Below, in pieces: positions 1 through 16,810 of a stretch of 64,000 bases of DNA. Positions within the stretch are counted from its first letter, which is position 1; each line of letters begins with the position of its first letter. Source of the DNA: Amphiscolops sp. MND2022 (taxonomy: Eukaryota); NCBI GenBank assembly GCA_964187785.1, contig OZ076413.1:30752001-30816000 (forward strand), in the 5' to 3' direction. The notes under the pieces are model-generated. The model saw only the letters and a program-made list of their open reading frames with translations, ran no database searches and had not been told where the DNA came from. Position numbers and translations under genes: made by a program.

Positions 1-506
1 TATAAGTCTGAGATAAGACAAGTGCAATGTAAGCAAAGAGAAAGTGGAGAATAAGAGTCGAGGGGGAGAAGGGGGAGAGTAAGTGTAAGAGAAGTAGAGG
101 AATTGATAAGTTGAGAGAGAGAGAGAGAGCTGTAAGTTGAGCTCAGCCGTCCGGCGGGAAAGAATGAATCTCCAGCCTGTGCGCGCGGTATAAAAACAGT
201 TCAGCACAGCTGTTGAAGTGCCTGGCCGGCATGTGTTGCATGCTACCAATGGTAGCTCAGCTTTAAAATTCAAATATCCGCGGTAAGAAATAGAAATTTT
301 CACTAGTGCAATTCCTTTCCCGTAGTATTCCATTACTTATTACTCCACTTCGAGGCCGCCGCGTTATGGCCGCCGCCATATTTACTTCAACTTTCCACTC
401 TCCACACAACGTTAGTTCAAGTTTTATGTTTCTCTTTGCACGTGTTATTTTTTATAATAGAAAGCGCCTTTTGGTGATTCGTTAGAGCGTTAGTCATAGC
501 GCGACA
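1..506 (-). repeat. 3' LTR (partial, truncated by window edge)
   Basis: Matches 16305-16810 with no indel; one substitution seen by eye (444 g vs 16748 a). Begins TGTCGCG on the minus strand. Confidence 0.95.
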
Positions 507-518
507 GCTCACCCCCCT
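507..518 (-). promoter_or_regulatory. Polypurine tract (PPT)
   Basis: Minus strand AGGGGGGTGAGC directly abuts the TG start of the 3' LTR. Confidence 0.75.
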
Positions 519-620
519 GGCAGGGTGAAAAAGCAACAACTTTACTAGAGAAATTTGGGGTCAGGTCAAGAAAGAGGTATTAGGTGAAAGAGCATGAGGG
601 AAGGGGGACATGTTTTAGCA

Positions 621-1523
621 CTAGGGTTTAGAAAAAAGGGGTCTGTCAAATTGAATTTGGATTATGACGGAGTCATTGTTTAGGAAGGCTTCTCTAAAGT
701 TTACCAGGAGTTTTGTGTGCGCGATGAAGTCTTCTCTCATCAGTCCTGGGAGTGTGTAGTCGTTCTTGTGCGGGTCTTCATACTCTTCTGTTTTGGAGGG
801 ATAGGGAAAGGAGATGGACCATTTGTTGTTCTTGTCTTTTTGGTCTATGATTGAGACGATCAATTGTTGCTCGAAAGGCCACGTCCGTGGGAGAGTGAAG
901 TCGCTGGGGTGTAGATCACAAGAAATTGAGGAATGGGTTCCGCGGAAGATGTTGGCGCCATAAGGGAATAGTCTGAGGGATATTTTGCAGCCGGTTAGGT
1001 GGGTAGTGTAGATAGGGCTAGTGAAGCTATTTTTGATGTTGTTCAACGCATCATTCGGGGAGGTCTTTGCTTTTCTGTATAGTGTGGAAAAAGCGGGTAT
1101 GTGCCAAAGGATGGGTTCACCACTTCTTGCGTCTAATACGTTGGTTTTGTTGAGTAGGGCGCCTTGAAACTTGATTGTCGCTTGTAGATTGGATATTGTG
1201 AGTTCCAAGTGATTACATTTAGTCCGCGTTTCTTCTGCCAAGTTTTGGAGTTGTTTCATTTCACTAGCAAACTTTGTTCTAGGCTGTTTTATGTCGGTTA
1301 TGGGAAACGATTTCCTTAGGATCGGGGTTACCTTTTTACTTTGTGGGCTAGTTGAGACTTCCAGTTCAGCGATCCATTTGTTCAATCTTTTGATTCCCTC
1401 GAGTGTCTCGAGGTCATCTTTATTCTCTGTCCTGGATAGAGGTGGCCAGTCGTTAGCTTTGGGGAAGGAAGGAGTGCTTTTTGGGATGAAGGGGATAGCG
1501 TCTGGGTTTAGCCTCCGATTCAT
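621..1523 (-). CDS. TRAF-like accessory protein: N-terminal PAM2-like motif, coiled coil, TRAF-C/MATH domain; no RING or zinc fingers
   Basis: aa ~135-293 (GEPILWHIP...FTSPIYT...GCKISLRLFPYG...RGTHSS...WPFEQQLIVSIIDQ...FLNNDSVIIQIQFD) follows the TRAF-C pattern (G.LIWKI...S.PFYT...GYK...R.Y.NG.G.G.GTHLS...WPF.QKV...L.DQ...Y..DD..FI...VD). Heptad-like stretch at aa ~86-128. LNPDAIPFIP at aa 5-14. Confidence 0.9.
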   Translation of the reverse strand: MNRRLNPDAIPFIPKSTPSFPKANDWPPLSRTENKDDLETLEGIKRLNKWIAELEVSTSPQSKKVTPILRKSFPITDIKQPRTKFASEMKQLQNLAEETRTKCNHLELTISNLQATIKFQGALLNKTNVLDARSGEPILWHIPAFSTLYRKAKTSPNDALNNIKNSFTSPIYTTHLTGCKISLRLFPYGANIFRGTHSSISCDLHPSDFTLPRTWPFEQQLIVSIIDQKDKNNKWSISFPYPSKTEEYEDPHKNDYTLPGLMREDFIAHTKLLVNFREAFLNNDSVIIQIQFDRPLFSKP

Positions 1524-2122
1524 TGTGCTGAGATGGCTCTTAGGGGGACCGTTAGTCTTTGTCCCTTTAGGGCTGGGTTCTCTATGGTGTACTCTTGTCT
1601 CTTGTTATCCCAGAAAACGATTTTCCAAGTTGAGAATTGTGGGAGGAGAGTGTATTTCAACTCTGTGTTGAATCTGGGCTTCTTAACGTGTCTTGCTCGT
1701 TTAGTGAAGTACTCCCGCTTGTGTTGTTTCTTCAGTGGCGTGTCATCTGTTATTTTGTCATTCCATTGTTGTTGGTGTTTCCTGGGTAGTGCCCGTCTTA
1801 TGTCTTTTCCGCCGAAGCGGGGTGGATGTTGGGGCGATCGAGGTGGATGTTGAGTTGATGGGATAGGCGCTACCTCTTCTGTAAATGACAGCGGAAAGGG
1901 GAGTTGTAGTGATGTCGTTGGAGAGGGTGTTGTTGTTAGGGCGCTTGGAATCGGAGAAGGAACTGTTGAGTCTGGGGGATCTAGGAGAAAGGTAATAGTT
2001 GTGGGAGAAGCAGGTGACAGCAGGTCAGAAGGTGATAAGGGTTCTATCTGCAAGTCGTCTTCTAAGATAGAGTTAGGGATGTCGTCGTCCAGGTTTGGGA
2101 GGTCGAATAAGGGTTCTAAATT
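1520..2122 (-). CDS. Accessory ORF without AUG: acidic/Pro-Ser-Thr-rich N-terminus, basic NLS-like patch, short beta-rich C-terminus
   Basis: The frame is open from 2122 (NLEPLFDLPNLDDDIPNSILEDDLQIEPL...) to TGA at 1520-1522 and contains no Met. It is preceded by GTTTACGTTTAG, which is acceptor-like. Its stop overlaps the TRAF ORF start (ATGA). Confidence 0.6.
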   Translation of the reverse strand, partial: NLEPLFDLPNLDDDIPNSILEDDLQIEPLSPSDLLSPASPTTITFLLDPPDSTVPSPIPSALTTTPSPTTSLQLPFPLSFTEEVAPIPSTQHPPRSPQHPPRFGGKDIRRALPRKHQQQWNDKITDDTPLKKQHKREYFTKRARHVKKPRFNTELKYTLLPQFSTWKIVFWDNKRQEYTIENPALKGQRLTVPLRAISAQ

Positions 2123-2153
2123 CTAAACGTAAACTACGAAATGAGATAATAAT

Positions 2154-4303
2154 TCATATTGGAGCAACAAAGCTCTGTACCGAGGGATATAGTGATTCCT
2201 CTTTTTGTTTTAGGATTTGGAGTTCTACTCCTTTTTCTTCGTCTTCTGTTTTTACCCTTTTGTCTTCAATGCTATCCTCGAAAGGGGCCCGCGGGGTAAA
2301 TACGGAAGTTAAAACAGAGGTAAAGAAAAGGTTGTACGAAGCACTGAGCAAGGTTTTAGTGAAGCTCAGTGTGTTACCTGTAAGGTGACGAAGTTCGAAG
2401 TAGCGGAAGACTAGTACCGTGATATCTATGACGAACTTGATAAAAAGGAAAGCGCCAAAGTACGCTCCGCAGAGTTCTAGTACATAAGATATACTTCCGA
2501 ATGTTTCGAGGAACTGATTTTTAAAGTAGTCGGGTGAAATCATTCCGTCGACATAGAAATCTGTACGAGGTGCGTAATACGCGAAGGATTCTGGTCCGCT
2601 GTGGGCCATGGAGGGTATGATGAGCTCTCTTGAGAACTTCTGGAGGGCATTACGTGATGCGGCGCTGATGAGGATGTTGTCCCAAAACTCGGAGAGTTGC
2701 TTGGGAGTGTACATTCCCGCGTCCTGTGATCCTGGGAAAGATCTGGTAATCATTGGCTGGATGTCTTTGGGTCCGAAGATAGCAGGCCGGTCCCGATGTT
2801 CGGGTGAAGGTGTAAGGGTGAACCAGGAGTCCTTGTCTTCCATGTCCAGTTGGAAGAGGTTCTTAATACGATCTGTGCAGTTTTGTACGTTCGCGTTAGG
2901 ATATGTTTGTCGGGTTATGGGGTCTACAAAGGCGACCACTCCCTTGTAGAAGATTGGTATGCGGTCGTAGCATTGGTTCATCGTGTGAAGAGGTGAGTGG
3001 GATTCCGGGCAGTGGTAGAGCCATGCGAGGCTACCATCTGTGTTCAGGAACATCGAGCGATTTCCCGTGAGCATGTATCCGGCGAGTCGTGGGTTTTCCA
3101 TGGATAACATCAGGATGGTAAGGATTTGTGTTCGTTCTTGCTCACATTGAGCTTTCAATAGCTGGATCTCTGAAGCTTCGAGTAAGCGGGTGCTCTCAAA
3201 GAAGAGATAATCTAACTTGGTTCCTTGGTGGAGTTCGTAATCCATGTTGAGATAATGTGGTGTGTTGGGGTTGGAGTCGCTGGGGCCTCTGAAGAGGTGG
3301 AGTCTGCCATTACCAGAACCATCGTTGGGTGAGTAATATTGAAGTTTGGAGGTTTCTCCCATGGAGATGCCGAGTCGTCTGCCAGAAGTCATGTCGAAGC
3401 CACCAAATTGGGTCGAAACGTAGAGGGATTCATAATTGGTAGGGTAGACATCATCGGGTTTGTTGCAGTATTTCTGTGGCCTGTTGTATATTTCGAATAG
3501 GAACTTGGTAGTGGAGTCGTTGCCGCTAACTATATAGTAGTTAGAGCCATGTTTGATCATATTCACTATTTCTTTTCTGTGGACTGCGAGCACGCAGTTA
3601 TCTGGCTCTGCCCATGTATAGGCGTACGGGTCCAATGACGTGGTTTCGCAGCCGAGTTGTTCCAGGGGGCAGGGGAGAACCATCTGGAAGGGTGTGAGGA
3701 TTTTCCCGTCTCTGGTTTTGACTGATAATTCTACGTCTTGAATATGAGATTCGAAGGTTTCGCGTTTAATCCATCCGCCTGTCTTGCACTCATTACGGGT
3801 ATCAGGGTCACGTACTCCATCCCAACTTTTTCCGTATTTGGCGTTTCTCGTCTGTACTTGTTTGACTCCTTTCTTAAATTTGAGGGGTTGTCCATGGATC
3901 ATGACTTCTTTGCCTTCGCCCATGGCCTTACAGGTTTCGGGTGACAAGGAAATATCGCTGGTGATTCCGTTGTGTAGGATTGACATACTGGAGTGGTCAT
4001 TATGACCACAATGCCATTCTTCACACTCTGGTGTTTCACACGGCACATAGTAGCGTTGATAGTGCGACGAAAGTGTTTAGTGTATAACGTCACGCTAGCA
4101 CGACTTACTTCTAAGTTTTCCGGGGCCACATTGCATTGCTCTACTTGATTCAAGGCGTAGAGCTTATTTTGTGTCATTTCGCCGCAGTCGAAATGAGTTA
4201 CTCGCAATTTTTTAGCAACGCTAGCGAGGTTTGGCGTTGAACGTTGTGAGTTCACAACGGGCGCGAAATTGGCGCATAAGAAGAGTAAGAAAAATAATTT
4301 CAT
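2154..4303 (-). CDS. env: Envelope-like type I membrane glycoprotein, probably class III fusogen-like; ~715 aa if the single frameshift near 4020-4030 is repaired
   Basis: Signal peptide MKLFFLLFLCANFAPVVNS. Cys-rich ectodomain starting HFDC...YALNQVEQC and continuing WHCG, with N-glycosylation sequons. C-terminal hydrophobic segment YVLELCGAYFGAFLFIKFVIDITVLVF. ORFs 3899-4303 and 2154-4046 overlap in different frames and join as ...CRVKHQS(EE)WHCGHND. Confidence 0.85.
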
Positions 4304-4382
4304 TGTTGAAATTCTTCAGTCTGTTTTTGAATCAACCGTGTAATCGCTCCCTGTTAAAGAATCAGTTTAAGTGTTTAGTAGA

Positions 4383-4838
4383 GACCGTAAAGAGGCAAGC
4401 CGTAATATCAAACCGGCAGCTTAGCTGGCACAACACTAAGCGGAGGTTAAAATTTTATAGTAGTAACCTCACTACTGTTAAAACGTGCCGAGGGGAACGA
4501 TAAGTATTTTATTATTTCAGGGAAATAGGTGTGTGTTCCAGAGAGGAGGATTCGTAGTAAGGCCGTAAAAAGGCAAGTCGTAATATCAAACCGACAGCTT
4601 AGTGGGCACTAGCACTAAGCGGAGGCTAAAATTTTATAGTAGTAACCTCACTACTGTTAAAAAAAAAGTGCCGAAGAGTAGGTTAATTATTGGAGCTTTA
4701 GTATATTTTATTATTGAGGATCCGTTATAAGGCCGTAAAAAGGCAAGCCGTAATATCAAACCGGCAGCTTAGTGGGCACTCGCACTAAGCGGAGGTTAAA
4801 ATTTTATAGTAGTAACCTCACTACTGTTAAAAAGTGCC
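4383..4838 (-). ncRNA. Three copies (4383-4489, 4561-4672, 4731-4838) of a ~108-nt structured, pseudoknotted cis-RNA motif upstream of env
   Basis: Conserved pairings AGUAG/CUACU with GAGGUUA/UAACCUC (H-type pseudoknot), GCUUAG(UG)/(CA)CUAAGC, GCCG/CGGC, and 5' GGCAC with loop GUGCC. Compensatory GCCG/CGGC to GUCG/CGAC change in the middle copy. Spacers between copies are unrelated. Confidence 0.7.
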
Positions 4839-4883
4839 AAAATAGGAAGTTAAAAGAGACTAACTTCAACCATTGCTGAAAGT

Positions 4884-5228
4884 TCAATTGTAGTTGTCAC
4901 GGATTGATTGTAGACTGGGAGAGGTTTTGTTTCGTCTTCTCAATTCGAGGAAGTCAATGAGCTTGTTGAGGAGGAACAGTGTTAGAGGGTGGATGTGGTC
5001 GAGATAGGCAATTTGCCTATATTCCTTTAGTGCGAGTGAGAGATCAGTAGCCTCTTGGGAGTTGGTGTCAACTGGGATGAGCCAATGTCCTGGGTTTTGC
5101 GGTCGGAGGCTATGGAGTTCGATTTGTAGTGAAGGTGCGTTTTCTTTCCAAGCGATAGAGAGAATTTCGAGAAGTGTATTTGTTTCAGGGTGGCGCCAGA
5201 GAAACTTGAGTTGAATCTTAAACATCAT
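4884..5228 (-). CDS. Small accessory ORF (114 aa), unknown function
   Basis: ATG start overlaps the upstream ORF stop (ATGATGTTTAA). Globular-looking composition; shares a motif with neighbouring small ORFs. Confidence 0.7.
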   Translation of the reverse strand: MMFKIQLKFLWRHPETNTLLEILSIAWKENAPSLQIELHSLRPQNPGHWLIPVDTNSQEATDLSLALKEYRQIAYLDHIHPLTLFLLNKLIDFLELRRRNKTSPSLQSIRDNYN

Positions 5229-5613
5229 AAGTGTCGACTAGGCTGTGAAGGTATTTGATTCTAACTTCTTCTTCGAAGGGGTTGGAGGTGAGAGTGATGT
5301 CCATAAAATAAACCAAGTCGTCGAAAGCCTTGTCTTTGAGAACTGCGGGGTGTTGGAGGATGTATTGCTTGAACGAAAGGAATAAGTAGGCGTATTCCTT
5401 GGATCCGAAGTGAATAGGGAAGAGGACTAGAGCTTCTTTGTCTTCTGGTGTGAGTATACGCACTTGAATCGCAGAGGTTGTGATCTCGTAGAAGATTGAC
5501 TGTATTTCGTATTGGCCCTTGAGTTGTATGGGAGTCCAAGGAACAGGAGGTTGAAACTGTGTGTGGAAGTAGTAATTATTTCCGCGGAACACGGCGACTG
5601 CGGGAGAGGACAT
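5218..5613 (-). CDS. Small accessory ORF (131 aa), unknown function
   Basis: ATG overlaps the previous stop as TAATG at 5611-5615; shared motif with neighbours. Confidence 0.72.
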   Translation of the reverse strand: MSSPAVAVFRGNNYYFHTQFQPPVPWTPIQLKGQYEIQSIFYEITTSAIQVRILTPEDKEALVLFPIHFGSKEYAYLFLSFKQYILQHPAVLKDKAFDDLVYFMDITLTSNPFEEEVRIKYLHSLVDTYDV

Positions 5614-5834
5614 TAAATGACTGACTTGGCTCTTGTGACGACTTCAGTAGGGGTGTTGTTATATAGCAAGCTCTCCAGTAGAGGGTAGATAGGTGATGCT
5701 GGCACACAAGTGTAGGTTTCACTTTCTTCTTCTGCTATTGCGTATGCTTGTACGATAATGTTCTGCGTTGAGGGTTCCTTCTGGATATCTGTGATTTGTG
5801 AAAGACGGTTGTCGATTTTGAAGATTATGATCAT
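5613..5834 (-). CDS. Small accessory ORF (73 aa), unknown function
   Basis: First of three coupled ORFs; starts at the edge of the AT-rich 5835-6123 spacer; shared motif with neighbours. Confidence 0.62.
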   Translation of the reverse strand: MIIIFKIDNRLSQITDIQKEPSTQNIIVQAYAIAEEESETYTCVPASPIYPLLESLLYNNTPTEVVTRAKSVI

Positions 5835-6123
5835 CTGTGAGATACTTCAGTGTTCACTGTTGTTCAAACATGGCAAATCTGAGAATGTAATCATCAGTTA
5901 TTTCATTGCGTTGGAGGACAGAGGTGTTTGAAAAGTATAAACACGATCTCGTAGAAGATCGTGGTTGAGTACAGAGAAGTTTCAAAAGATATATTCTATC
6001 TATTGTAGGATTATCGTAGGCGGTTTAGGCAAATAACCATAAGATATTGTTATAAAATAAGAGATAAATATTTGTTTAAGCATGCATTACTTTAGGACAA
6101 AAAAAAGCTAAGATATCTTCAGA

Positions 6124-6768
6124 ATGAGTAACAACAACGAGTCTGACTACTACGAGGAATCATCGACCGATGAGGAAACAGTTGCGTCTGCTGCTTCGTC
6201 GTCTGCTCCCTCGTCGTCTGCTCCCTCGTCGTCTGCTCCCTCGTCGTCTGTGGGCCCTTCGTCGGCCGCTGGGCCTTCTTTGTCGTTGGCTGGGCCTTCT
6301 TTGTCGGCGGCTGGGCCGTCCTCCTCTTCTGCGCCTGTTGCTGCTGTGGCCCCCAGGCCAGTCCTGCAGGCCTCCACAGTAGTGGCTCAAGGGGTTTTAG
6401 AGAACCCCGGAGAGCAGAGTTTTCTCAGCCTCTTTAACCGGAGGGACGTGGACCGGTTAGAGAATTGGGCCTCTTTGTCCCGTTCCATGCGGGGGTCTCC
6501 CGGGTTTGCCTTATCTGGGGCGCCCATCCCAAATGCCTTTGTGAGCTTCTTGAGGGCCAACCTGGGAGCCCGTTGGGAGGGAACCCTCCTGTCCCCTCTA
6601 GGGGAATTAGTGCTGTGTTAACTGAGGGCCTATATAGATGGGTTCTGCCAGTTGACCAGCTTCGAGAGGGGGCAGTGGGTGAGGCTGTACCAGTTATGGA
6701 CCAGAGAGGAGCGGGCTTCCCAGTTGAGGCGGCTAGCGGAGAAAGGCGGTTTCCTGGAGATTGAGTAG
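6124..6768 (+). CDS. Antisense accessory ORF (acidic N-terminus, Ser/Ala/Pro repeats, helical-looking C-terminus) with an in-frame TAA at 6619-6621
   Basis: ATG 6124 to TAA 6621 gives 165 aa. The same frame stays open for 48 more codons (LRAYIDGFCQLTSFERGQWVRLYQLWTREERASQLRRLAEKGGFLEIE) to TAG 6766-6768. 15-bp (SSSAP x3) and 21-bp tandem repeats keep the frame. Confidence 0.55.
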
Positions 6769-6930
6769 GCGCAAGTCGCCTCTCATCTCCAGGAAAATTC
6801 TCTACTATTTTTATACGCTTCTGTGCTTGTGGCTTTTCGTAAGTCATGTTCGGGATTGCACAAATAATATCGATAAACGGAAGTAGAATATATTAAAGGT
6901 AATACATCGCTAATAGGTTAAATGTGCCGG

Positions 6931-7317
6931 CTAGGAGCTAGGTGAGGAGATAGTCGAGCAGCAGAATAGGTCCTTTTGAGTATTGGGTGAGGAAGGTTGT
7001 AGGTCAGGAATTAGGGTAGGCATGTAGGATAAGAGTTCTTCTAGGATAGGGTCGTGATGGTTGACTGCATGGTAGGCTAGGTGCTGATATAGTTGAGCAA
7101 ACGTTTTGGATTCTGGGTGAACATGAAGATTTGATTTTCGGGGCGTAGGTTGTTTGTGGGGGCTCGGGTCTGGGTCGTTGGAGTAGAAGCAAATTCTAAT
7201 TAGTTTGTTTGTGTAGGTCCAGTAGATTTTTGTGATTGTAACGTGTAGAACGTTTAAGGATTGGAGTTCTCGTGGAACTTGCCATGATAAATTTAGGTAA
7301 ACTTTATGACAAGGCAT
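6931..7317 (-). CDS. Small accessory ORF (128 aa) immediately after pol
   Basis: ATG lies 8 nt downstream of the pol stop; shares a motif with the 73/131/114-aa ORFs. Confidence 0.65.
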   Translation of the reverse strand: MPCHKVYLNLSWQVPRELQSLNVLHVTITKIYWTYTNKLIRICFYSNDPDPSPHKQPTPRKSNLHVHPESKTFAQLYQHLAYHAVNHHDPILEELLSYMPTLIPDLQPSSPNTQKDLFCCSTISSPSS

Positions 7318-7325
7318 GATGTAGA

Positions 7326-10300
7326 TTAGGCTTTGTAGCCTACGCGAGTTTTTTGCCGAAGGATGGACAGTGGTGCTGGTTGGTTGGGTTGTGCTCGCTG
7401 ATAGCGGGGATTTCTTTCGACGTGACTTGCAACCGCTCGCCTGAGTTCTTGTAGGGGTGTCAAAGATTTGGTCGAAGTAGCCGGTGTGGTAGTCAAGGGT
7501 TCGGGTGTTATTTGTTGCGTCAGTGTTTGGATAGGAGTAGTTGAACCAGGAGGACGGGATGTAGTAGGCTGATCCGGAGTTGTTGGTGTTCCCAACCGGT
7601 GATTTTCTGGGGAAATAATACCAGAGTCGGTGCTCTGGGGAGTTCTCACTCGTTTTTGTGCGGTGGTCTGTCTTTGTTGGTTTCGGACTGGTAAAATGCA
7701 GAGATCCCCGAGTATCTGTGGTTCTGAAACATTAAGTCGTTCTATTCTTCCTTTGACAAAATTGTTATAGAAATCCGTGTCTCCACGGTAGGGAGTTGTG
7801 TATTCTTCTATAAGAGGGGGGAGTGTTTCCTCTTTGGGAAAGTATTCTATTAAATGATTTCTATGGACTGTTCGGAGATTTTCGGGGTTTTGATCGTTTT
7901 TTATTTGGTATGTTGTGTTGGTGATTCTCTTGGTAACTGTAAATGGTCCTAATCGCAGTTGTTGAAGTTTTTGGCTTTTGGAGAGGTCTTTCCGATGGTT
8001 TTCTAACAAGACCTTTTGTCCGATGTTGAGATGGCTGCCTAGTTTAAATCTGTTTCTGTAGGCATGAGATCTAGCTGTTTGTTTTCTGCATTTTTCGTAA
8101 GTGGACGAATAGATTTTCTTGAAGGCGGTCTCTCTTTCAAGCAAGTTTTGAGATAGTTGAGGTCTTAATAGTCCATTCAGCAGTTCGTTTTTGACTTGGT
8201 TTTCGCTGTGGCAGTGAGGAGGCAGTCCGTTGCAGAACTGTGATCTGCAATTCTTGTTTTTATTACGGTATAGACCCAACTTAAGACTCATAGGTATCTG
8301 TGGTTTATTGCAGAAGACTATTTCGTATGGTGTCTTTCCAGTGGTATAGTTGACGCTTGTGTTGTGGGCAAATGCGAATTTAGCAGCTAGTTGGGCCCAG
8401 TTGTTTCCTGAGTCGTTTAAGAAGTTTCTCCAGTACCTTGCAATGTGTTGGTTTTGGGTTTCCACTTTTCCGTTAGTCCAGGGTGAGTGTGCAGTTCTTG
8501 GCCGGAGAGTGATGCCTAACTCTTTAGTCCAATTGACGAATTCAGTGTTTACGAAAGCCGTTCCTCTATCGTGTATGATAGACTGCGGTATCCCATAGTG
8601 CATAATCCATTTTTCCATAGCGTTGATTGTTGACTGTGCACCTGTGTCTCTAACTGGGTATGCCATCAAGTAGCGTGAAAATGCGTCGATGATGAGGAGG
8701 CAATGTGAATTTCCACGACTGGGAGGGTTGAGTGGTCCCTTGTGATCGATATGAACAGTTCTGAATACTTGGGTCTCGGTTTCACAGTCCTCCAGTGGGA
8801 CTTCGTTATTTCTTCTTTGTTTGGATTTGTTAGATTGGCAGCTAACGCAATCTTGTGTGAGGGCACAAATCCAGTCGTGCATCCCGGGCCAGTAGTAGAA
8901 TCTTTTAGCATTTAGGTAGGTTTTCTCGGCTCCCATATGGCCTCCGAGGTCGTTGTAGTGTCCTAATCGGAAGCAGGCGAGAAATAAGGAGAGTGGTAAG
9001 CATATTCGAAGATTTTCTTCTTCCGTCTTATCTGTAGGTTCATTGTAGCACAGTAGGTTTCCGTTTTCTTCTATGGTCAATCTATCAAACTCTTGGGAAT
9101 AGCGCATGAGTCCTTTAGAGTGTTGTAATTCTGGTGATTTTGGCGTAGGCCTGTTTCCGGTTTGTATCCATCGTCGAACCACACTGAGCACCGGGTCATT
9201 GATCTGTTCTTGTAAGATTGTTGTGACGTCTAGATCCACTTCTTTTGATATTTTGTCGAGTTGACTGACGAGCTCTCGGGCTGGGGTCTTGTGTTTTTCC
9301 GTTGAATTTGTAGGTAGACTGAGGTGTTCTATTGCCTTTGCATTTTCGGGAATACCTGTGTTACGTGCGGTGAGATCTTCAGTGTTGAGCTCGTAGTTGG
9401 TCTCGTTTACTTCATGACTTTGGTTGTCTGTGCAGGCTTCATCATCTGCATCGCTATTGATGGAGCTGTAAGTATTCTGAGACGAATCGGAAGTGCTATC
9501 CCTTGTCCCGGATCTGATTTTTAGCTCTGAAAATTTTCCTAGTTCTCTTCCAGCGTCGAGACAACTCTGTGCTGACTCTATTTTCGGCAGGTTAGGTTCC
9601 TCGTAGATATTGTTAACTGTGAAGTTATTTCCATCGTTTTGCAGGTGAAGAATTTTTCGTTCATCTCCTTTTTCGTACAGGATGGGGTAGAAATCGTTTT
9701 TTGACGTTTCTTCGTTTTCTTCGTGTTTTATTTTGTAGTGTATTTGGGTTCCATGCTCGTCGAAGAAGTGAATATCGTTCGGTAGGATTTTGTGACTGAG
9801 TTGATGTTTTTTGTGTTCTTCTATCGATACGTTTCTGCTGAGTATATCAGGGAAGGCTAAATTGCTTCCTGGGGTCCAAATTATCTTGAGATTTGGGAAT
9901 TTAGAGATTATTACTTGGTACCTGAAGAAACGCGGTGAAACTTGTCCTTTTCGTCCCCAGAGATAAAGAATTGGTTTGTGGTCACAATATAAGTAAATTG
10001 GAAAGGGAGATCCAATGATATAGTGTTCGTAGGTTTGTAATGCTGAGACTATTCCACATAGTTCTCTATGTAGAGTAGACATTTTTTGTTCTTCTTTTGC
10101 GAAGACTCTGGAATTGAAAGAAATGATCCGTTTCCCTTCTGGAAATTGTTGTATGAGGATACATCCTGTCCCTACGTTGGACGAGTCGACGTGTATATGA
10201 AAGGGATATTTTGTTGAAGGTACCGCAAGAACTGTGTCTTCGCTGATTCTTTTCTTTATTTGTTGGAAGAGGTCTTCATGTTCTTGGTTCCAACAGAAAT

Positions 10301-12836
10301 TTGTATCCTTTTTTGTGAGTTCGTAAAAGGGTCGACTATCGACGTGAAGGTTCTTGATGTAGCAGCTGTAGAAACCTAAGGCTCCCAAGAAGCTTTTCAC
10401 TTCGGTTTTGGTTTTTGGTGATTTGAGATTATGTAGGTCTCTTACTCGTTTAGCTACGGGTTGTATTCCTTCTGCTGCAATCACATGTCCCAAAAACTTG
10501 ACTTTCCTCAAGAAGAAGAGTGTTTTGTCAGGTGCCGCTTTTAGTCCCGCTTTCCGTAGTAGGTTATGGTATTCTTGAATCACTGTGAACATTTCTTGTT
10601 TACTTTTCGCTTGCATCAACGTGTCGTCTATGTAGGTGATTGCTTGTTTCTTTTTAATGAGAGGTTCGAAGTGAATTGTCATCATTCGGCTAAAGAAGCT
10701 TGGTAACCCTTTAAGTCCGTAGAATCCTCTGGTGAAGGTGTATTGTTTCCCGCCTATGATGAAGCTTGTAAGTTTTTGTGTAGGCTCGTCTAATGGGACT
10801 TGGTGAAATGCACAGGAGAGATCACTTACTGAGAAGATGTTCCCGTTGATTAGTGTCATTATGGTTTGGATCGGTTCTAAGGGCCAGGAGTAGTTTGTTA
10901 GATCCGTCACTGAATTTAGGTATCTTGCGTCTATGATCAGTTTTACATAGTCGTGTTTTGGTTGTAGTATAATAGGATTTACGAATAAGGATCCCATTTC
11001 GTCGTCATCGCCCATCTCTCTGATAATATCGGCGTCTTTGAGTTGTGTGAGTAGCTTCTCTAACTTTTCTCTTAGGTGAAGTGGTACTTTGCTGGGTCTC
11101 TGTCTCTTCAGGATTGCTCCAGGTTCGAGTTTGATGTTAAATTTCTGTCTGGTTTTTCCTACGTCGAATTTGTGTTGGGAGTATACATCTCTCGCATCCA
11201 TTAGTTGGTCTATTAGGAGCACAAGTTCCTCGTCAGTAAGGTCTGAGTAGCGAAAGTCGAATTCTTTGATGTATTGCACTGCTTCTTTGTTCTGGTACTG
11301 AAGGTAATACTCGATCAGTCTTTCGTTGTCTTCTTTTTGCCTGAAGATTTTAAATTGCTCATCGCAGGGTGGTTGACAAGACTTTGCGTCACTCGTAAAG
11401 TCTGTCTCCAGCTCTCTATGTTTAAGGTGAAATTGCTCGGAAAATTGTTGTATCTCGTCTTCCAGCGCGTATTCGGGGTCTCCTCTCGTAGTCATAGCAT
11501 AGACGTCTAGTTCATTTCTTGTATAAATTCGGAGTTGTATTTCCGAGTAGGCAAAAACATCTTGAATAATTTGTGTCACATCTTGCCATTGGAAATCTTC
11601 TAGTTCTGACGCTTCTCGTAACATAGAAATGGTCTTGATACAATTCATTTTGGCGTGTGCTTTTAGAGTCTCTAGCGTTTGGACTAAGATTTGTGGGTCG
11701 ATTTTGTCTTTTGATTTAGCTTTTGTGATTAGGACGTATATGAATCGTTTTAGATTCATGTCCCAGTAAGGTATTGTATCCCCTTTGAGTGGTTTCTGTT
11801 TTGCGCAAGATTCTTTTAACAAGGGTATGTTCGTTAGGATTTCTTTCGAGAAGCCTTTGGCTGGCTTCAGATCTGCCGGGACAAAGATCATGATGGAGTC
11901 GGGTCTGCTGAGGATTGTAGTAGAATTTCCTCCTTCTATTCTGATGCAATCGTTCATATCTTGTGAAGGGATGGTGGAGTGCAACAGGAAACAGTCATTG
12001 TATTCTTCGTTTTCGTTTAGGATAGCGTAGGCGAGTTCCGTAGGGTTTCTAACTTGGTATTTTGGAATTTCTTGGTCTAATACGTCGAGCAGAGAGTATC
12101 CAATAGTTCCTTTTACTAGGGTGATTGTATGGTTTTTGTTATTTTCCATGACGATTGGCAAAGTCTTCTCAAATCTTGTACAAAGGACATTTATAAAATT
12201 TAGTCCTGTAGAGACTGCTTTTCTGTTGGGTAGGAACGTAGATCCGGGAGGAAAGGAGTTCTTGGGGTTTTCCGGTGCAAATTTGTAACATCTTGTCGTC
12301 TTTGGTTCGATATACATTGAGTGAGGAATTCGGACTGAGAGTATTTGTGATACGTAGGGGTAACATTTGTTGAGTTGTAGACTGCCATAGCAGAAAGTAT
12401 TTATAGGTCTTTTGAGTTCTATGCCAGGAAGATCAAAGTGTATTTTGTTAACTTGTTCTTGACAGAAGTTCATTCCAAGGAGGTTTTGGGTCTTCATCTC
12501 TGTTATCCAGACTGTCAGTGGGAAGTTATGTTGTCCATCGGAATCGTAGTAGAGTTTAAGGGTGATGTATCCCATCATAGGGATGATCTGCCCAGAGTAG
12601 TTCCGTGTTGTGTTGTTACTTCTGCTGAGTTCGAGGTCTTGTTGAAATTGACAGAGTTCTCTAAAGGTCCTGTAGTTAATGATTGAAGATGTTGCCCCAG
12701 TGTCTAGTAGAAATTCGATTTCTAAGCCACTATCTTTTTGTGAGTCTCCGGCAGCAAAATAATAAAGATTAAGACTAAATTTTAGTGGGGCAGTGCTGCT
12801 GTTACGGTTTTTCGGAGACCTTAATAGTTTAAAGGG
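7326..12836 (-). CDS. pol: Pol: aspartic protease, dUTPase-like spacer, TARG1-like macrodomain, RT, RNase H, integrase
   Basis: The frame is open upstream of the tracked ATG to the gag end and includes FLLDTGA (DTG at 12696-12704). RT YIDD; RNase H HVDSSNVG...DHKP; IN HHCC (H...GH...CVSC), D-D-E core (HIDHKGP, HDRGTAF, KVETQN) and LGPF. Confidence 0.96.
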   Translation of the reverse strand, partial: PFKLLRSPKNRNSSTAPLKFSLNLYYFAAGDSQKDSGLEIEFLLDTGATSSIINYRTFRELCQFQQDLELSRSNNTTRNYSGQIIPMMGYITLKLYYDSDGQHNFPLTVWITEMKTQNLLGMNFCQEQVNKIHFDLPGIELKRPINTFCYGSLQLNKCYPYVSQILSVRIPHSMYIEPKTTRCYKFAPENPKNSFPPGSTFLPNRKAVSTGLNFINVLCTRFEKTLPIVMENNKNHTITLVKGTIGYSLLDVLDQEIPKYQVRNPTELAYAILNENEEYNDCFLLHSTIPSQDMNDCIRIEGGNSTTILSRPDSIMIFVPADLKPAKGFSKEILTNIPLLKESCAKQKPLKGDTIPYWDMNLKRFIYVLITKAKSKDKIDPQILVQTLETLKAHAKMNCIKTISMLREASELEDFQWQDVTQIIQDVFAYSEIQLRIYTRNELDVYAMTTRGDPEYALEDEIQQFSEQFHLKHRELETDFTSDAKSCQPPCDEQFKIFRQKEDNERLIEYYLQYQNKEAVQYIKEFDFRYSDLTDEELVLLIDQLMDARDVYSQHKFDVGKTRQKFNIKLEPGAILKRQRPSKVPLHLREKLEKLLTQLKDADIIREMGDDDEMGSLFVNPIILQPKHDYVKLIIDARYLNSVTDLTNYSWPLEPIQTIMTLINGNIFSVSDLSCAFHQVPLDEPTQKLTSFIIGGKQYTFTRGFYGLKGLPSFFSRMMTIHFEPLIKKKQAITYIDDTLMQAKSKQEMFTVIQEYHNLLRKAGLKAAPDKTLFFLRKVKFLGHVIAAEGIQPVAKRVRDLHNLKSPKTKTEVKSFLGALGFYSCYIKNLHVDSRPFYELTKKDTNFCWNQEHEDLFQQIKKRISEDTVLAVPSTKYPFHIHVDSSNVGTGCILIQQFPEGKRIISFNSRVFAKEEQKMSTLHRELCGIVSALQTYEHYIIGSPFPIYLYCDHKPILYLWGRKGQVSPRFFRYQVIISKFPNLKIIWTPGSNLAFPDILSRNVSIEEHKKHQLSHKILPNDIHFFDEHGTQIHYKIKHEENEETSKNDFYPILYEKGDERKILHLQNDGNNFTVNNIYEEPNLPKIESAQSCLDAGRELGKFSELKIRSGTRDSTSDSSQNTYSSINSDADDEACTDNQSHEVNETNYELNTEDLTARNTGIPENAKAIEHLSLPTNSTEKHKTPARELVSQLDKISKEVDLDVTTILQEQINDPVLSVVRRWIQTGNRPTPKSPELQHSKGLMRYSQEFDRLTIEENGNLLCYNEPTDKTEEENLRICLPLSLFLACFRLGHYNDLGGHMGAEKTYLNAKRFYYWPGMHDWICALTQDCVSCQSNKSKQRRNNEVPLEDCETETQVFRTVHIDHKGPLNPPSRGNSHCLLIIDAFSRYLMAYPVRDTGAQSTINAMEKWIMHYGIPQSIIHDRGTAFVNTEFVNWTKELGITLRPRTAHSPWTNGKVETQNQHIARYWRNFLNDSGNNWAQLAAKFAFAHNTSVNYTTGKTPYEIVFCNKPQIPMSLKLGLYRNKNKNCRSQFCNGLPPHCHSENQVKNELLNGLLRPQLSQNLLERETAFKKIYSSTYEKCRKQTARSHAYRNRFKLGSHLNIGQKVLLENHRKDLSKSQKLQQLRLGPFTVTKRITNTTYQIKNDQNPENLRTVHRNHLIEYFPKEETLPPLIEEYTTPYRGDTDFYNNFVKGRIERLNVSEPQILGDLCILPVRNQQRQTTAQKRVRTPQSTDSGIISPENHRLGTPTTPDQPTTSRPPGSTTPIQTLTQQITPEPLTTTPATSTKSLTPLQELRRAVASHVERNPRYQRAQPNQPAPLSILRQKTRVGYKA
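11520..11948 (-). other. TARG1/OARD1 (Poa1p-like) macrodomain within Pol
   Basis: RFIYVLITKAKSKDKIDPQILVQTLETLKAHAKMNCIKTISMLREASELEDFQWQDVTQIIQDVFAYSEIQLRIYT aligns by eye, without gaps, to the TARG1 C-terminal half as recalled (RYIYYLITK...L..SLEAMKSH...LSMPRIGCGLDRLQW..V...IEEVF...I.I.VY). Confidence 0.8.
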
Positions 12837-14275
12837 CGAATATCGGCGACAGAGTTCACCGAGTAATCTGTTTCGAGAAACTGTACGGTGTTATGTCTTC
12901 CCATGTCGTTAGTTCTAGGGAACCTTTGTTCGTAGGTTTGAGTGGGGGTGTTTGGTCTTTCGTTTCTGTTTTGTGGTCTATTAAAGACTGAGTTATTCCT
13001 TGGTGGAAGAGGCTGTATGTTGCGGTTGAAGGAGTTAGGCTGGTCTCTGTTGAAGCTGAACGGAGATCTTGCTCTTTGGGGCCCAGGAGAAACACTTCTG
13101 GAATTGTTAGAATTGTTTAGAAAAGGTCTTCTTCCTTCTTGTGAAAATCTTTGGTTACCAGGACTGAATCTTGTATTCATAGGTCGGCGTTCTGGGTTGA
13201 AATTTCTTCTTTGTGGTCTATCATATTGGTTCCGGGCAGGGTTTGACTGCATGGCTCCAGCAAGTGCTAGTTGATGTGCCACAGCCATATGTTTTCTGAT
13301 TTCTGAATCGGGTAGTCTAGTTTGGAATCTAGAACCATGTCCAGGTCCAGTTCTTTTGTTGTAATCGTTGGTGAAAGTTATTCGTCTCTCTGGGTTGGAT
13401 TCATTTTGAACTTTCTTGATTTCTTCATCTCTCATCTTCTTTCTGCACCAGTTAGGCGTATGCCCATTTGTTCGGCAGTAGCTGCAAAACCTGGTGGCCA
13501 TTCTACGTCCTGTTGCGTTCGGATCAACAGTTTTCTCTATTGCATTAATAGTGTTGTTCGTCTGTTCTTTGATTTGTAGCTTGATTCCTTTGATGTCTTC
13601 TCGCAATTCTTGGATGAGTGGGTCTGCGTGTGATTCTCCACCGGTGAGAGAGGTAGTTACTGTGTAAGAAAGGTCTTTGTTTATTACAGCTTGAGAGAAC
13701 TGCTCCCAGGTTGCATTCGGATGATCCATTAAGTATTCGTGTGCCTTTTCCCTCAGTTTCGGGGGTCGAAGGCCTCTCAGTGAGTAGTCAATGCACCTCT
13801 GTCTTCTTTGTCTGTCTTGTGCTGCTCTTTCGGCGTCTCTATTGTTCTGTGCGACTCCGGCTAGATCATCTGGCCATCCTTTTCCGACTACTATTTTAAT
13901 TCTGTGTAGGAAGTTCTTTATTTCTTCTCCATCTCGTCTGATGACGTGTTCGGCTTCCATTCTGTGTCTAAATTTGTTTCTGCCATCTGCGAATCGCGTT
14001 ATGAACCTCTCTCTGATTTCTGCCCAAGTGTTAGCGTCTGTGATGCTGGTCTCGAACCACTCTGCTGCGGGTCCTCTTAATAGTGTAGCAAAATAGGATT
14101 TTCTTCTGAAGTTGTAGTCATCAAGTGCTGGTCCGTTGGCCGGGGTATCACCGTGAGAAAACCGGAACTTCTTTTCAATGAGCTGTATGAATTGTTCAGG
14201 ATCTTGATCTGGGTCTGTTCCTGTGAATTGGTCTCGGCCTAGGTCTGGATAAGCCAAGTAATTTTGCGCAGCCAT
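12821..14275 (-). CDS. gag: Gag (capsid-like region, CCHC zinc knuckle, Arg/Asn/Pro-rich tail)
   Basis: 484-aa ORF upstream of pol; CSYCRTNGHTPNWC = C-X2-C-X4-H-X4-C; LRGPAAEWF and LRGLRP resemble retrotransposon capsid motifs. Confidence 0.92.
   Translation of the reverse strand: MAAQNYLAYPDLGRDQFTGTDPDQDPEQFIQLIEKKFRFSHGDTPANGPALDDYNFRRKSYFATLLRGPAAEWFETSITDANTWAEIRERFITRFADGRNKFRHRMEAEHVIRRDGEEIKNFLHRIKIVVGKGWPDDLAGVAQNNRDAERAAQDRQRRQRCIDYSLRGLRPPKLREKAHEYLMDHPNATWEQFSQAVINKDLSYTVTTSLTGGESHADPLIQELREDIKGIKLQIKEQTNNTINAIEKTVDPNATGRRMATRFCSYCRTNGHTPNWCRKKMRDEEIKKVQNESNPERRITFTNDYNKRTGPGHGSRFQTRLPDSEIRKHMAVAHQLALAGAMQSNPARNQYDRPQRRNFNPERRPMNTRFSPGNQRFSQEGRRPFLNNSNNSRSVSPGPQRARSPFSFNRDQPNSFNRNIQPLPPRNNSVFNRPQNRNERPNTPTQTYEQRFPRTNDMGRHNTVQFLETDYSVNSVADIRPLNY
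12827..12836 (-). promoter_or_regulatory. -1 programmed ribosomal frameshift site (overlapping C CCU UUA and U UUA AAC)
   Basis: Minus strand CCCTTTAAAC is in the gag frame two codons before the gag TAA. The pol frame is -1 relative to gag and open through this site. Confidence 0.85.
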
Positions 14276-15290
14276 TGTGAGCTATTGAGGTTATAAAAGA
14301 TAGAAGATGAAGTAAGGAAAAATAAGCCAAAGACTCTGTGAGGTATGATACTCCTGGTTTTTGAGAGTAACTACAAAGAGCGGAAGTAAAAATTGTTTGT
14401 ACAATGATTCTAACAGTGATAATTATTAGGCAGGTCTGACAAAACATATACTCCGTAATTCGCTGCTAGTAAAAATGAAATTAGCGCATCTCAGCCCAGG
14501 ATAGGCACATTCCCAGTATTTATTACTGAAATTTCAAAATTTTTAGGGGATACTTACAAATCCCGCTTGTGTTACGATTACCGTAAAAAGGGTAGTTCGG
14601 AGTATACCAATCCTCCGAGTTAAGCTTAAAAGATTGGAGAGTACAGTCGGTCCAATAGGTCTTCAATTCGCTAGACTAGCCTTTCAATGGCTTTTGTAAA
14701 AGTAGTACTAGAACTAACCAACAGAGGGAGTCACTCTCGTCCTCAGGATTAAGTGCGCGGGGCCAAGATCACTATCATGCAAACACTCGGGTACTATCAC
14801 TAGAATACTAGGTTTCCCACTTGGAATGCTACACAGGTTCCGGGACACCCACTGGGCTCACGGCCTTCAACCAGTCTCCGAGGAGACCTAGGCGGGCTTT
14901 TACTTAATGTGTGTCCGTCTGGACTTGAGTGAACTTCCCAACTGTAAGTTTAAATTCCGTGTTAGAGGGCAGTTTCATTCTTGTTTAGGACCGAATGTAG
15001 TCTAGCATTTCCGTAAAAATAGATCAGCGCTAACCTTTTTGTGGATTGAGAGGACTAAGTTGGGTAGAGCACAGTCTCTTCCAACGGCTGTTAAGCTGGA
15101 GAGATTCTATTAGAGTATTTACTAGCAGTTCTGTAATTTATATAGACTAAAGAAGCCACATATTGGGGCAGTAGGAGAAAAAAGAAAATCAGAAGTAAGA
15201 TTAAGAGAAATAGGTAGTTAACCCTAACTTCTGAGAGTAGGGATTCGAACAGATTGCTCATTTACTTCTCTATAGTAAGAGAAAAAGGAT

Positions 15291-15308
15291 GCCTCACTGG
15301 TCGCACCA
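15291..15308 (-). promoter_or_regulatory. Primer binding site
   Basis: TGGTGCGACCAGTGAGGC starts 3 nt after the 5' LTR end, complementary to a tRNA 3' CCA end. The tRNA identity was not determined. Confidence 0.85.
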
Positions 15309-15311
15309 GTT

Positions 15312-16810
15312 TGTCGCACGCATGGATAAATTTCAGTTCTGCTATTTTACAGTTTCCTCTTTTAGAGGGGAATTCCAAATTTGTTATCCGTATTAGTCAG
15401 CCCAGCTGTTACAACATTTGGCAAAATGCTTTTCCAACAACTGTTGTTTTATTGAAGTAGAACAAGTAGAAAAGTCTCAATAACTTAATTTCTTTTTTGT
15501 AATACCGAAAAGAAAGTGCCTTGCGTGTACGTGCGAACAAAGGAACTTGCGTGAGTAAGTGCAAGGCAGGGAATGTAAATGAGCTCTCTGAACTAAAAAA
15601 AAAAACATATGTTAGCAAACTTGTTGAATTACATAAAAGAGTTGAACTTCAGACATATCAGTTTTTATTCAACTGTTTACAAGTATTCAGTCAAACTCAC
15701 CAAATTTATTTGCCAGCAACCGAAGTAATATCTTAGCTATTTCAATTTAGAGCATAAATTGATGAAGAAATTTAGCATCGAAGGAAATTCATAGTAATTT
15801 CCTTTAGTTCGAAGAAAGTTTTTTTACGAAAAATCCAGTTTTGGTGTTGTAATAACTTAGACAACACTATTTAATTTTATAGTCTCTACTCCTTTGTTTT
15901 AGGAATAGCATTAAGACTTTAGGAATAGCATCTTTTTTTTTTTTTTGAATATGGGAATGGTAAAGACAAATAAGTTAACAGGGGAAAACCGCAGAATTAA
16001 ATCAGCAGAATTATTCTAAGATAGAATTTTAACAACCGCAGAATTAAATCAGCGGAATTATTATAAGATAGAATCCGCAGAATTGAATCAGCGGAATTAT
16101 TCTAAGATAGAGTTTAGTTAGAAGGAGGGAGAGTAAAAAATCTCCTCTAAAAGAAAAAATCTAAGATATTTTCGACTCACCCAACTGGAGACCAAGTTGA
16201 ATTGAAGAGAATTTTCTAAGATAGAAAATTCTGTTGGGGAATAGAGAAAAGGAAAAGATAAGTTTTTGCTTGAGGAAAGGGAGAAAAGGAGGAAAGTTTG
16301 ACTTTATAAGTCTGAGATAAGACAAGTGCAATGTAAGCAAAGAGAAAGTGGAGAATAAGAGTCGAGGGGGAGAAGGGGGAGAGTAAGTGTAAGAGAAGTA
16401 GAGGAATTGATAAGTTGAGAGAGAGAGAGAGAGCTGTAAGTTGAGCTCAGCCGTCCGGCGGGAAAGAATGAATCTCCAGCCTGTGCGCGCGGTATAAAAA
16501 CAGTTCAGCACAGCTGTTGAAGTGCCTGGCCGGCATGTGTTGCATGCTACCAATGGTAGCTCAGCTTTAAAATTCAAATATCCGCGGTAAGAAATAGAAA
16601 TTTTCACTAGTGCAATTCCTTTCCCGTAGTATTCCATTACTTATTACTCCACTTCGAGGCCGCCGCGTTATGGCCGCCGCCATATTTACTTCAACTTTCC
16701 ACTCTCCACACAACGTTAGTTCAAGTTTTATGTTTCTCTTTGCACGTATTATTTTTTATAATAGAAAGCGCCTTTTGGTGATTCGTTAGAGCGTTAGTCA
16801 TAGCGCGACA
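15312..16810 (-). repeat. 5' LTR, 1499 bp, termini TGTCGC...GCGACA
   Basis: 6-bp terminal inverted repeat with TG...CA ends; PBS adjacent; right part is duplicated at 1-506. Confidence 0.92.
15989..16113. repeat. Three 39-bp imperfect direct repeats inside the LTR
   Basis: ccgcagaattaaatcagc(a/g)gaattatt(c/a)taagatagaat at 15989, 16036 and 16075. Confidence 0.9.

Follow-up and report, generated by a model that had tools for sequence, protein, structure and literature searches.

The export elements of retroviruses and retrotransposons, such as RRE, musD MTE and MLV PTE, are RNAs built of several stem-loops and need pseudoknots or kissing loops to work (PMC4588558). Ty3/gypsy elements that carry an env gene have only recently been shown to be widespread and ancient in animals. 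To our knowledge, neither the expression of env nor the handling of unspliced RNA is known for such elements outside Drosophila. In metazoans they occur as many young copies (PMC13524379). Here we describe a tandem array of small structured RNA units in front of the env gene of one such element, which lies in a window of 64,000 nucleotides from Amphiscolops sp. MND2022 (GenBank assembly GCA_964187785.1, contig OZ076413.1, positions 30,752,001 to 30,816,000; the positions below are those of the window). As an RNA motif the array is new and well supported; the animal retroelements to which its carrier belongs were recognised as a group only recently, and our literature searches found no description of the motif.

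Positions 1-16810 of the window are a single long terminal repeat (LTR) retroelement on the minus strand. It has LTRs, gag, pol with reverse transcriptase (RT), RNase H and integrase, and then a viral fusion glycoprotein, the composition of an env-carrying Ty3/gypsy (errantivirus-like) element. The array is placed between small open reading frames (ORFs; 5228-4884) and the ATG of env (4303). A reading of the bare sequence, made earlier and called the sequence-only reading below, had described a triplicated repeat here on the minus strand. The three units are recovered by TRF (a tandem array at 4385-4833, period 170, 2.6 copies), by direct-repeat families that are 88-98% identical, by a 38-nt core with three occurrences against none expected, and by a covariance model (Table 1); all the strings quoted in that reading are present on the minus strand. 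In the fold of each unit (approximately 100 nt), a compact H-type pseudoknot precedes two hairpins, H3 of 8 bp and H4 of 4 bp. Stem 1 of the pseudoknot has 5 bp and stem 2 has 7 bp; one loop is a single nucleotide and the other is A/U-rich. The A/U-rich loop had been given as 8 nt and is 9 nt long (4807-4799 in unit 1). The hairpin loops, ..AGUGCC and GUUUGAUAUUA, are conserved too, and the tails that follow H4 are homologous across the three units. The spacers had been called unrelated, which does not wholly hold: the first 35 nt or so after each unit align, and AATAATAAAAT is present in both. On the sense strand this string (4705-4715 and 4506-4516, minus) resembles a polyadenylation signal; there is none after unit 3.

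Relatives of the element were gathered by searching with an intact env and then fetching the genomic context of diverged homologues; apart from L021, they come from three ENA long-read assemblies. Ten sister copies (L001-L010) carry the same three units nearly base for base, with four units in L004. Because they are almost identical, the sister copies give no independent covariation; their private substitutions keep some stems and break others, as expected under neutral decay after insertion. The check on further copies that the sequence-only reading had suggested thus gave covariation from the distant relatives and no independent variation from the close ones. Among the former, L011 (env 74% identical) has three abutting units and L015 and L021 have one unit each. 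L012 (env 56% identical) and L018 (63% over 82% of the query) also have one unit each, with the pseudoknot built differently. L020 keeps only the 3' half of H3 together with H4, and its env has been retained after the loss of the pseudoknot. The number of units is 1, 3 or 4. In the unit-bearing relatives the motif is directly upstream of env, with the exception of the L021 contig, in which the presence of env was not checked. L021 is the sole match to the exact pseudoknot pattern in the JGI metagenomes and belongs to project Ga0126343, a Cyphastrea sp. metagenome according to a preprint. In six other env relatives (L013, L014, L016, L017, L019, L022) neither nhmmer nor the covariance model finds the motif, and among viral contigs neither a scan with the pseudoknot pattern nor one with the env profile gave matches. 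The motif is confined to the position before env in env lineages A, B and C, and the covariance model, run over 169 kb, places it nowhere else; a match at 59273-59366 of the window (15 bits, E 0.08) is taken as chance. Some of the env clusters have hundreds of members.

Two of these relatives deserve a remark in their own right. In L015 (ENA ERZ26859043, ctg60967_13.85x_c, 17,516 bp) a whole element of lineage C was assembled into a circle that is about as long as one element and has a single LTR, either an effect of the LTRs on the assembly or extrachromosomal circular DNA. L011 (ERZ25074608, ctg181932) has gag, a 385 amino acid ORF without RT or integrase domains, a 113 amino acid small ORF, the three units and env, and lacks pol; it looks like a pol-deficient derivative in which the RNA module and env are retained.

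We examined covariation in an alignment (A3) of ten distinct units from four lineages, counting the 29 base pairs of the structure proposed in the sequence-only reading; profile models (nhmmer, Infernal) served for searching only. Standard pairs occupy 92.9% of the alignment cells. Double compensatory changes are found in 13 of the 29 pairs, compared with a mean of 6.3 in shuffled alignments and none of 500 shuffles as high, statistics that kinship among the units inflates. When the 3' partners are slid by one to three columns as a control, merely two to four pairs show double changes; these low values and the many distinct compensatory variants argue against an artefact. Stem 2 of the pseudoknot has double changes in five of seven pairs, is paired in 95.7% of cells and occurs as at least six different sequence pairs. 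For H3 (the GCUUAG hairpin) the fraction is 5/8, and for H4 (the GCCG hairpin) it is 2/4, with the variants GCCG/CGGC, GUCG/CGAC and ACCG/CGGU. RNAalifold predicts stem 2, H3 and H4 when no structure is supplied.

Stem 1 shows no double change in its five pairs: AGUAG/CUACU is invariant in eight units, and the two strands are complementary in all ten. In L012 and L018 this stem can adopt one of two forms, four pairs with a bulge or five shifted pairs (AGAGU/ACUCU) that directly abut stem 2; the shifted pairing seems supportive of stem 1, though it is not column-wise covariation. The two helices cross, as in an H-type pseudoknot, the support for stem 1 being the weaker. Loops of 1 and 9 nt, or in L012 and L018 of 3 and 10 nt, together with stems of 5 and 7 (6) bp are compatible in size with solved frameshift pseudoknots. 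The small GCC/GGC hairpin that had been proposed as a further helix is missing in units 1-2 of L011 and in L012, L015, L018 and L021, where the stretch is a pyrimidine tract. Hence, of the helices proposed earlier, stem 2, H3 and H4 hold by covariation and stem 1 by complementarity, and the small hairpin is not supported.

Among the substitutions put forward earlier as evidence for the fold, the double compensatory change in H4 of unit 2 (GUCG/CGAC, 4594/4578) is real; it is common to unit 2 of all 11 family copies and so counts as one inherited event. The G at 4626 is private to the window copy and thus a change after insertion, which makes it uninformative on selection. A further proposal was a second pseudoknot, in which the loop string GUGCC would pair with the GGCAC that opens each unit. 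This pairing shows one double change, in poorly alignable columns, both strings being essentially invariant. No module has one string without the other. L011 has each of them only once, GGCAC where the array begins (5') and GUGCC in its final unit, an arrangement that could be a closing helix for the whole array.

When single units are folded, the sense strand gives weak energies (z -0.7 to -1.6) and the antisense strand better ones, and single-sequence folding is uninformative for a pseudoknot; the structural case therefore rests on covariation and not on thermodynamics. The sequence-only reading had favoured a selected RNA structure of element sense over a plain DNA repeat. This is borne out by compensatory changes in three helices, by an excess in stem 2 and H3 of G-U cells, which pair only on the sense strand, over A-C cells, which pair only on the antisense strand (13 versus 5), and by the position before env, which is kept where env is 56-74% identical. 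We consider it very probable, from the pattern of substitutions, that the pseudoknot, H3 and H4 truly form and that they act as RNA of the sense strand. Since the stems covary, a functionless repeat is excluded.

Table 1. Features of the array and of the element that carries it (window positions; stems and hairpins are given as 5' arm/3' arm).
Feature	Position	Strand	Remarks
Unit 1	4743-4842	minus	Covariance-model match, 114.4 bits
Unit 1, opening and pseudoknot	GGCAC 4838-4834, then U-tract and CAG; stem 1 4825-4821/4812-4808; stem 2 4819-4813/4798-4792; loop 4807-4799		
Unit 1, hairpins	H3 4790-4783/4774-4767, loop GUGCC 4779-4775; H4 4765-4762/4750-4747	minus	
Tail after H4 of unit 1	4729-4746	minus	Pyrimidine-rich, holds the GCC/GGC hairpin; counterparts after units 2 and 3
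Unit 2	4573-4676	minus	Covariance-model match, 110.3 bits
Unit 2, parts	GGCAC 4672-4668; stem 1 4655-4651/4642-4638; stem 2 4649-4643/4628-4622; H3 4620-4613/4604-4597		
Unit 2, H4	GUCG 4595-4592/CGAC 4580-4577	minus	Compensatory variant
Unit 3	4395-4493	minus	Covariance-model match, 106.5 bits
Unit 3, parts	GGCAC 4489-4485; stem 1 4476-4472/4463-4459; stem 2 4470-4464/4449-4443; H3 4441-4436/4424-4419; H4 4417-4414/4402-4399		H3 of 6 bp
Mini-ORF, 7 codons	4850-4873	minus	Sole ATG between upstream ORF and env; contains GTTAGT 4864-4859
3'-splice-site-like signal	4351-4381	minus	Branch-point-like CTACTAAAC 4381-4373; pyrimidine tract to CAG, TTCTTTAACAG, 4361-4351
5' LTR	15312-16810	minus	About 1.5 kb
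Primer-binding-site-like TGG...	15308-15291	minus	Directly after 5' LTR
gag	14275-12821	minus	
pol	12578-7326	minus	RT, RNase H, integrase
Small ORFs, several	7317-4884	minus	Between pol and array
Two overlapping small ORFs, 131 and 114 amino acids	4884-5613	minus	Adjoin the module upstream; kept in lineages A and C
env	2154-4303, ATG 4303	minus	Pfam: Monjiviricetes_fusion
MATH/TRAF-domain ORF, 300 amino acids	621-1523	minus	Between env and 3' LTR
3' LTR	1-506	minus	Runs off the window start

Splice-site-like signals that are shared with its relatives flank the array on both sides, and this points to a control element that resides in an intron. In the window and in L011, L012, L015 and L018, an ATG and then a GT-A-G motif are found 7-25 nt before the module (window: ATGGTTGAAGTTAGT, 4873-4859; L015: ATGGTTGAGGTGAGT; L012: ATGGTAGAGGTTAGA; L018: ATGGTGGAAGTAAGA; L011: ATGACCCAGGTTAGT). 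The motif reads GTTAGT in the window and L011, GTGAGT in L015, GTTAGA in L012 and GTAAGA in L018. The letters that are fixed are those fixed by the spliceosomal 5' splice site, and variation occurs only at positions free of consensus. On the other side, a pyrimidine tract with AG follows the last H4 in every relative, at a distance of 0-45 nt, and the candidate acceptor of the window ends (4351) 47 nt before the env ATG. Relatives of lineages D and E, which lack the motif (L016, L017, L019), have GGTTAGC and, 50-60 nt on, a pyrimidine tract and AG just before env; other hairpin-bearing tandem repeats lie further upstream in these three. The sequence features of a spliceosomal intron (GT...AG, donor positions +1, +2, +4 and +5, a pyrimidine tract and a branch-point-like motif) are found in the window, L011, L012, L015 and L018 and also in L016, L017 and L019. 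The simplest reading, which we infer from these signals, is that each of these elements carries a short intron directly in front of env, which in lineages A-C houses the module.

The same interval holds other hairpins. In lineages B and C there are one to five copies of a second hairpin, which also covaries. It is about 32 nt long and lies upstream of the pseudoknot, with an outer stem of 4 bp, a bulge of 2-3 nt, an inner stem of 4 bp and a U-rich loop of 7 nt; it is found at 3693-3825 in L012, 2752-2780 in L015, 2796-2855 in L018, 2758-2915 in L020 and 1203-1232 in L021. Both of its stems covary, e.g., GACG/CGTC and GGTG/CACC in one, and CCGG, CTGG/CCAG and TCGG/CCGA in the other. Between a TATA-like box and the pseudoknot there is, in addition, an 8-nt self-complementary string (L012 3836-3843; L015 2793-2800; L018 2873-2880; L021 approximately 1244-1251), which varies yet stays self-complementary (CGACGTCG, CCACGTGG, CGGCGTCG, with G-U as RNA). 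Related strings with an ACGT core occur in the H3 loops of L011 units 1-2. The string could be an RNA-RNA contact or a dimeric DNA-binding site. Taken as a whole, the interval before env is a mosaic of selected hairpins that have been duplicated, lost and replaced between lineages.

With a probability of about 0.4, we propose that the array is a protein-binding control element in an env-proximal intron, acting on the intron-retaining genomic RNA through the balance of splicing or through export. The three units fill the interval between the 5'-splice-site-like motif (4864) and the branch-point, pyrimidine-tract and AG signal (4351), which would be the last intron before env. The array would then be present in full-length and partly spliced RNA and removed from env mRNA, and so would mark the RNAs that retain the intron, namely the genomic RNA as well as the messages for gag-pol or the small ORFs. 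It is tempting to conjecture that the conserved loops on their covarying stems form a repeated binding platform for an RNA-binding protein, encoded by the host or by the element. The bound protein might hold the env acceptor in check, allow unspliced genomic RNA to be exported and used, or do both, and more units would give more avidity. A cis-acting RNA platform is favoured over a single precise machine because the loops stand on covarying stems, the units occur in one to four copies, the modules have been reshuffled from lineage to lineage and L020 has kept env after losing the pseudoknot. The second-hairpin arrays of lineages B and C are likewise typical of binding-site arrays and not of one precise RNA machine.

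Several points weigh against this proposal. All the sequences compared are DNA assemblies, so that 4864 and 4351 are candidate splice sites, and GTTAGT is a weak donor. Among the small ORFs we find none that is arginine-rich or otherwise evidently RNA-binding, and no basic RNA-binding patch. Rfam scans give no sequence likeness to known export elements. Moreover, the same 15 nt that hold the donor-like motif can be read as part of a mini-ORF, all four of their variable sites falling at third codon positions; the region before env is poor in ATG; and the U-tract and CAG that open each unit could be an acceptor, in which case the fold would lie inside env mRNA.

These last three points lead to the alternative that survives best, namely that the units are retained in the leader of env mRNA, either because the acceptor lies at them or before them or because nothing is spliced there, and promote translation of env, as an IRES-like (internal ribosome entry site) element or enhancer or by shunting or reinitiation behind the mini-ORF. 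The mini-ORF has 4-7 codons and stops 0-11 nt before the module in five lineages, and in the window no ATG but its own occurs in the 580 nt that separate the upstream ORF from env. Equivalents are seen in L011, L012, L015, L018 and L021, and their overlap with the 5'-splice-site-like motif admits both readings. ATG is depleted in the pre-env regions of several lineages (window: 1 versus 4.4 expected by dinucleotide shuffles; L018: 1 versus 5.0; L017: 1 versus 11.1), suggestively by simple shuffles and only modestly by these dinucleotide shuffles, and we find no such depletion in the other non-coding parts of the element. Such scarcity would fit a scanned 5' untranslated region (UTR) better than an intron. 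However, CAT is as scarce as ATG in the window, so the depletion is not strand-specific there and the signal is weak. An acceptor at the CAG of a unit would cost two of the five stem 1 pairs, and L020, in which the pseudoknot has been lost, still keeps env. Neither the spacing between the last unit and the env ATG (approximately 40-115 nt) nor the copy number (1-4) is constant, unlike in intergenic IRESs, which makes an arrangement of that kind unlikely. A dicistrovirus-type intergenic IRES is a three-pseudoknot fold that abuts the first decoded codon; here there is one pseudoknot per unit at a variable distance, and no Rfam IRES model matches. Altogether we regard retention in the leader as unlikely.

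A bolder idea is that the pseudoknot and the two hairpins, approximately 85 nt, are a new class of self-contained RNA device that alone governs env expression. Such a device could block decay, promote cap-independent translation or act as a ligand- or protein-sensing splice switch whose pseudoknot conceals the CAG at its own 5' edge. If true, it would be the first of its kind in a retrovirus-like element of this group, and portable, as the modular spread in one to four copies suggests. We think this doubtful.

The remaining alternatives had mostly been raised in the sequence-only reading, which listed an IRES, an exonuclease-resistant RNA, a ribozyme and a packaging signal, and could match the motif to no named family. 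An Infernal run of Rfam 15 (4227 models, among them IRES, exonuclease-resistant RNA, self-cleaving ribozyme, riboswitch pseudoknot and retroviral element models) gave no match in the whole window at the gathering score, and permissive scans of 4200-5000 and of L015 gave only chance-level matches (E 1.7-2.7, 14-20 bits). The absence of a named family is thereby confirmed, and none of the proposed kinds is represented by a known family here.

A signal for genome packaging or dimerisation would use GUGCC with GGCAC, and the ACGU-core palindromes of relatives, for RNA-RNA or Gag-RNA contacts that mark the unspliced RNA. The interval would be specific to unspliced RNA if it is an intron, both strings are in every module, at the two array ends in L011, and self-complementary 6-8-mers change yet stay self-complementary (CGACGUCG, CCACGUGG, CGGCGUCG with G-U) in lineages B and C and in the hairpin loops of L011. 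Against this, GGCAC/GUGCC has no covariation, the palindromes are absent from the window's own units, and retroelement packaging signals usually lie in the 5' leader. We give it a small chance.

The array may instead act as DNA, either as an internal env promoter or enhancer repeat or as independently transcribed small RNA genes that end at T-runs. Every unit has TATAAAA on the sense strand (TATAAATA/TTTAAATA in L018/L012), and TTTATAAAAATCT is found 26-30 nt upstream of the pseudoknot start in L012, L015, L018 and L021. Runs of four to nine T follow H4 in nearly all units, and a variable tandem copy number is typical of enhancers. But unit 1 of the window has no TATA-like string upstream, and the T-runs end in AG in all single-unit relatives, which suits splice acceptors better. 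A DNA site explains neither the two-sided changes that preserve pairing nor the excess of G-U over A-C, and a role of this kind seems improbable to us.

Each unit might also stall 5'-3' decay as an exonuclease-resistant RNA and leave a shortened RNA that starts at the unit and carries env. Tandem compact pseudoknotted units upstream of an ORF resemble the arrangement of such elements in some RNA viruses, and the 5' GGCAC could pair with a downstream loop. This putative pairing shows no informative variation, there is no Rfam match even at E<=10, and the product would be uncapped and would need its own mechanism of translation. A strict requirement is hard to reconcile with lineages that have a single unit and with L020, which has lost the pseudoknot, and this explanation is very improbable. 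A new self-cleaving ribozyme that frees env RNA is barely credible: the fold is compact and pseudoknotted with invariant junction nucleotides, and ribozymes are reportedly known in other retroelement classes, but no Rfam ribozyme family matches, and the duplication, loss and replacement of hairpins among lineages are unlike a catalytic core.

The element that carries the array has an LTR identity of 505/506 (1-506 versus 16305-16810, the portion within the window). Its gag, pol, small ORFs and MATH ORF have equal lengths in the window copy and the sister copies. The env of the window copy has one frameshift; in the sister copies env is intact and encodes 715 amino acids. A PDB sequence search with env gave no match, and the 131 and 114 amino acid small ORFs have no Pfam match. 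A MATH/TRAF ORF of 250-440 amino acids between env and the 3' LTR is found throughout lineages A-E (window, L001-L012, L016-L020) and resembles a host-type signalling domain aboard a retrovirus-like element.

The 5' LTR has tandem repeats (15987-16115 and 16383-16445), with units of about 47 nt that contain a CCGC...GCGG inverted repeat and with a GA-rich 26-mer; comparable hairpin-bearing repeats are the 49-nt repeat at 8883-9163 in L012 and the 56-nt repeat at 8403-8677 in L011. Inside this LTR there is also an intron-like stretch (15595-15697, minus), with GTGAGT, a branch-point-like motif of the CTAAC type, a long T-tract and an AG approximately 100 nt on. A second donor-like GTGAGT lies near 16185, and both are candidate leader splice donors. 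In the small-ORF region, short tandem repeats (a 15-mer in 4.4 copies and a 21-mer in 2.9) occupy 6185-6317 (plus coordinates), where the strand of the called ORF differs among sister copies; the 137 amino acid ORF called there, very basic and rich in Pro, Ser and Gly, is probably not a real gene. Outside the element, the window has a Bel/Pao-type element (Peptidase_A17, RT, integrase, DUF1759, DUF5641; 20724-27367, minus) and a copia-type pol (RVT_2, integrase; 42354-45722, minus), so that the region is rich in transposons and shows no evident host gene. A bacterial promoter and terminator scan is not applicable to this eukaryotic element.

A small fold well backed by covariation thus characterises the stretch next to env in several families that are abundant and very young. 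Through the module, their post-transcriptional control can be approached at a concrete, mappable site. The module also adds a new pseudoknot motif to the catalogues of RNA structure, with a covariance model ready for genome surveys.

How does the array compare with known systems? By its gag, its pol and its viral-type fusion glycoprotein, the element belongs with the env-carrying Ty3/gypsy elements of cnidarians and other metazoans. The survey of these elements makes no mention of splicing, tandem repeats, RNA structures or a MATH-domain gene (PMC13524379). The pseudoknot itself is built like the H-type pseudoknots of retroviral frameshift sites, in which, as textbooks describe, stems have 5-7 bp, the first loop has 1-2 nt and the A-rich last loop has approximately 8-12 nt. 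However, the pseudoknot of the array is non-coding and present three times, has no slippery site, lies outside overlapping frames and is always followed by two conserved hairpins. Short pseudoknotted modules set head to tail beside an ORF are also textbook features of RNA-virus UTRs, as tandem exonuclease-resistant RNAs, which are defined by a ring-like fold around the 5' end, and as pseudoknot domains, whereas the array has no Rfam match and its host element is integrated as DNA and transcribed in the nucleus. Like the HIV RRE, the musD MTE and the MLV/XMRV PTE, which act on incompletely spliced RNA (PMC4588558), the array is a non-coding, multi-stem-loop and putatively cis-acting RNA in the env-proximal or 3' part of its element, and by analogy it may have a similar role. 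It differs from them in that its units are tandem and approximately 100 nt long, compared with 400-1400 nt, with no sequence or model match. In role, therefore, the array would most resemble the post-transcriptional control elements of retroelements, while being far smaller and unrelated in sequence.

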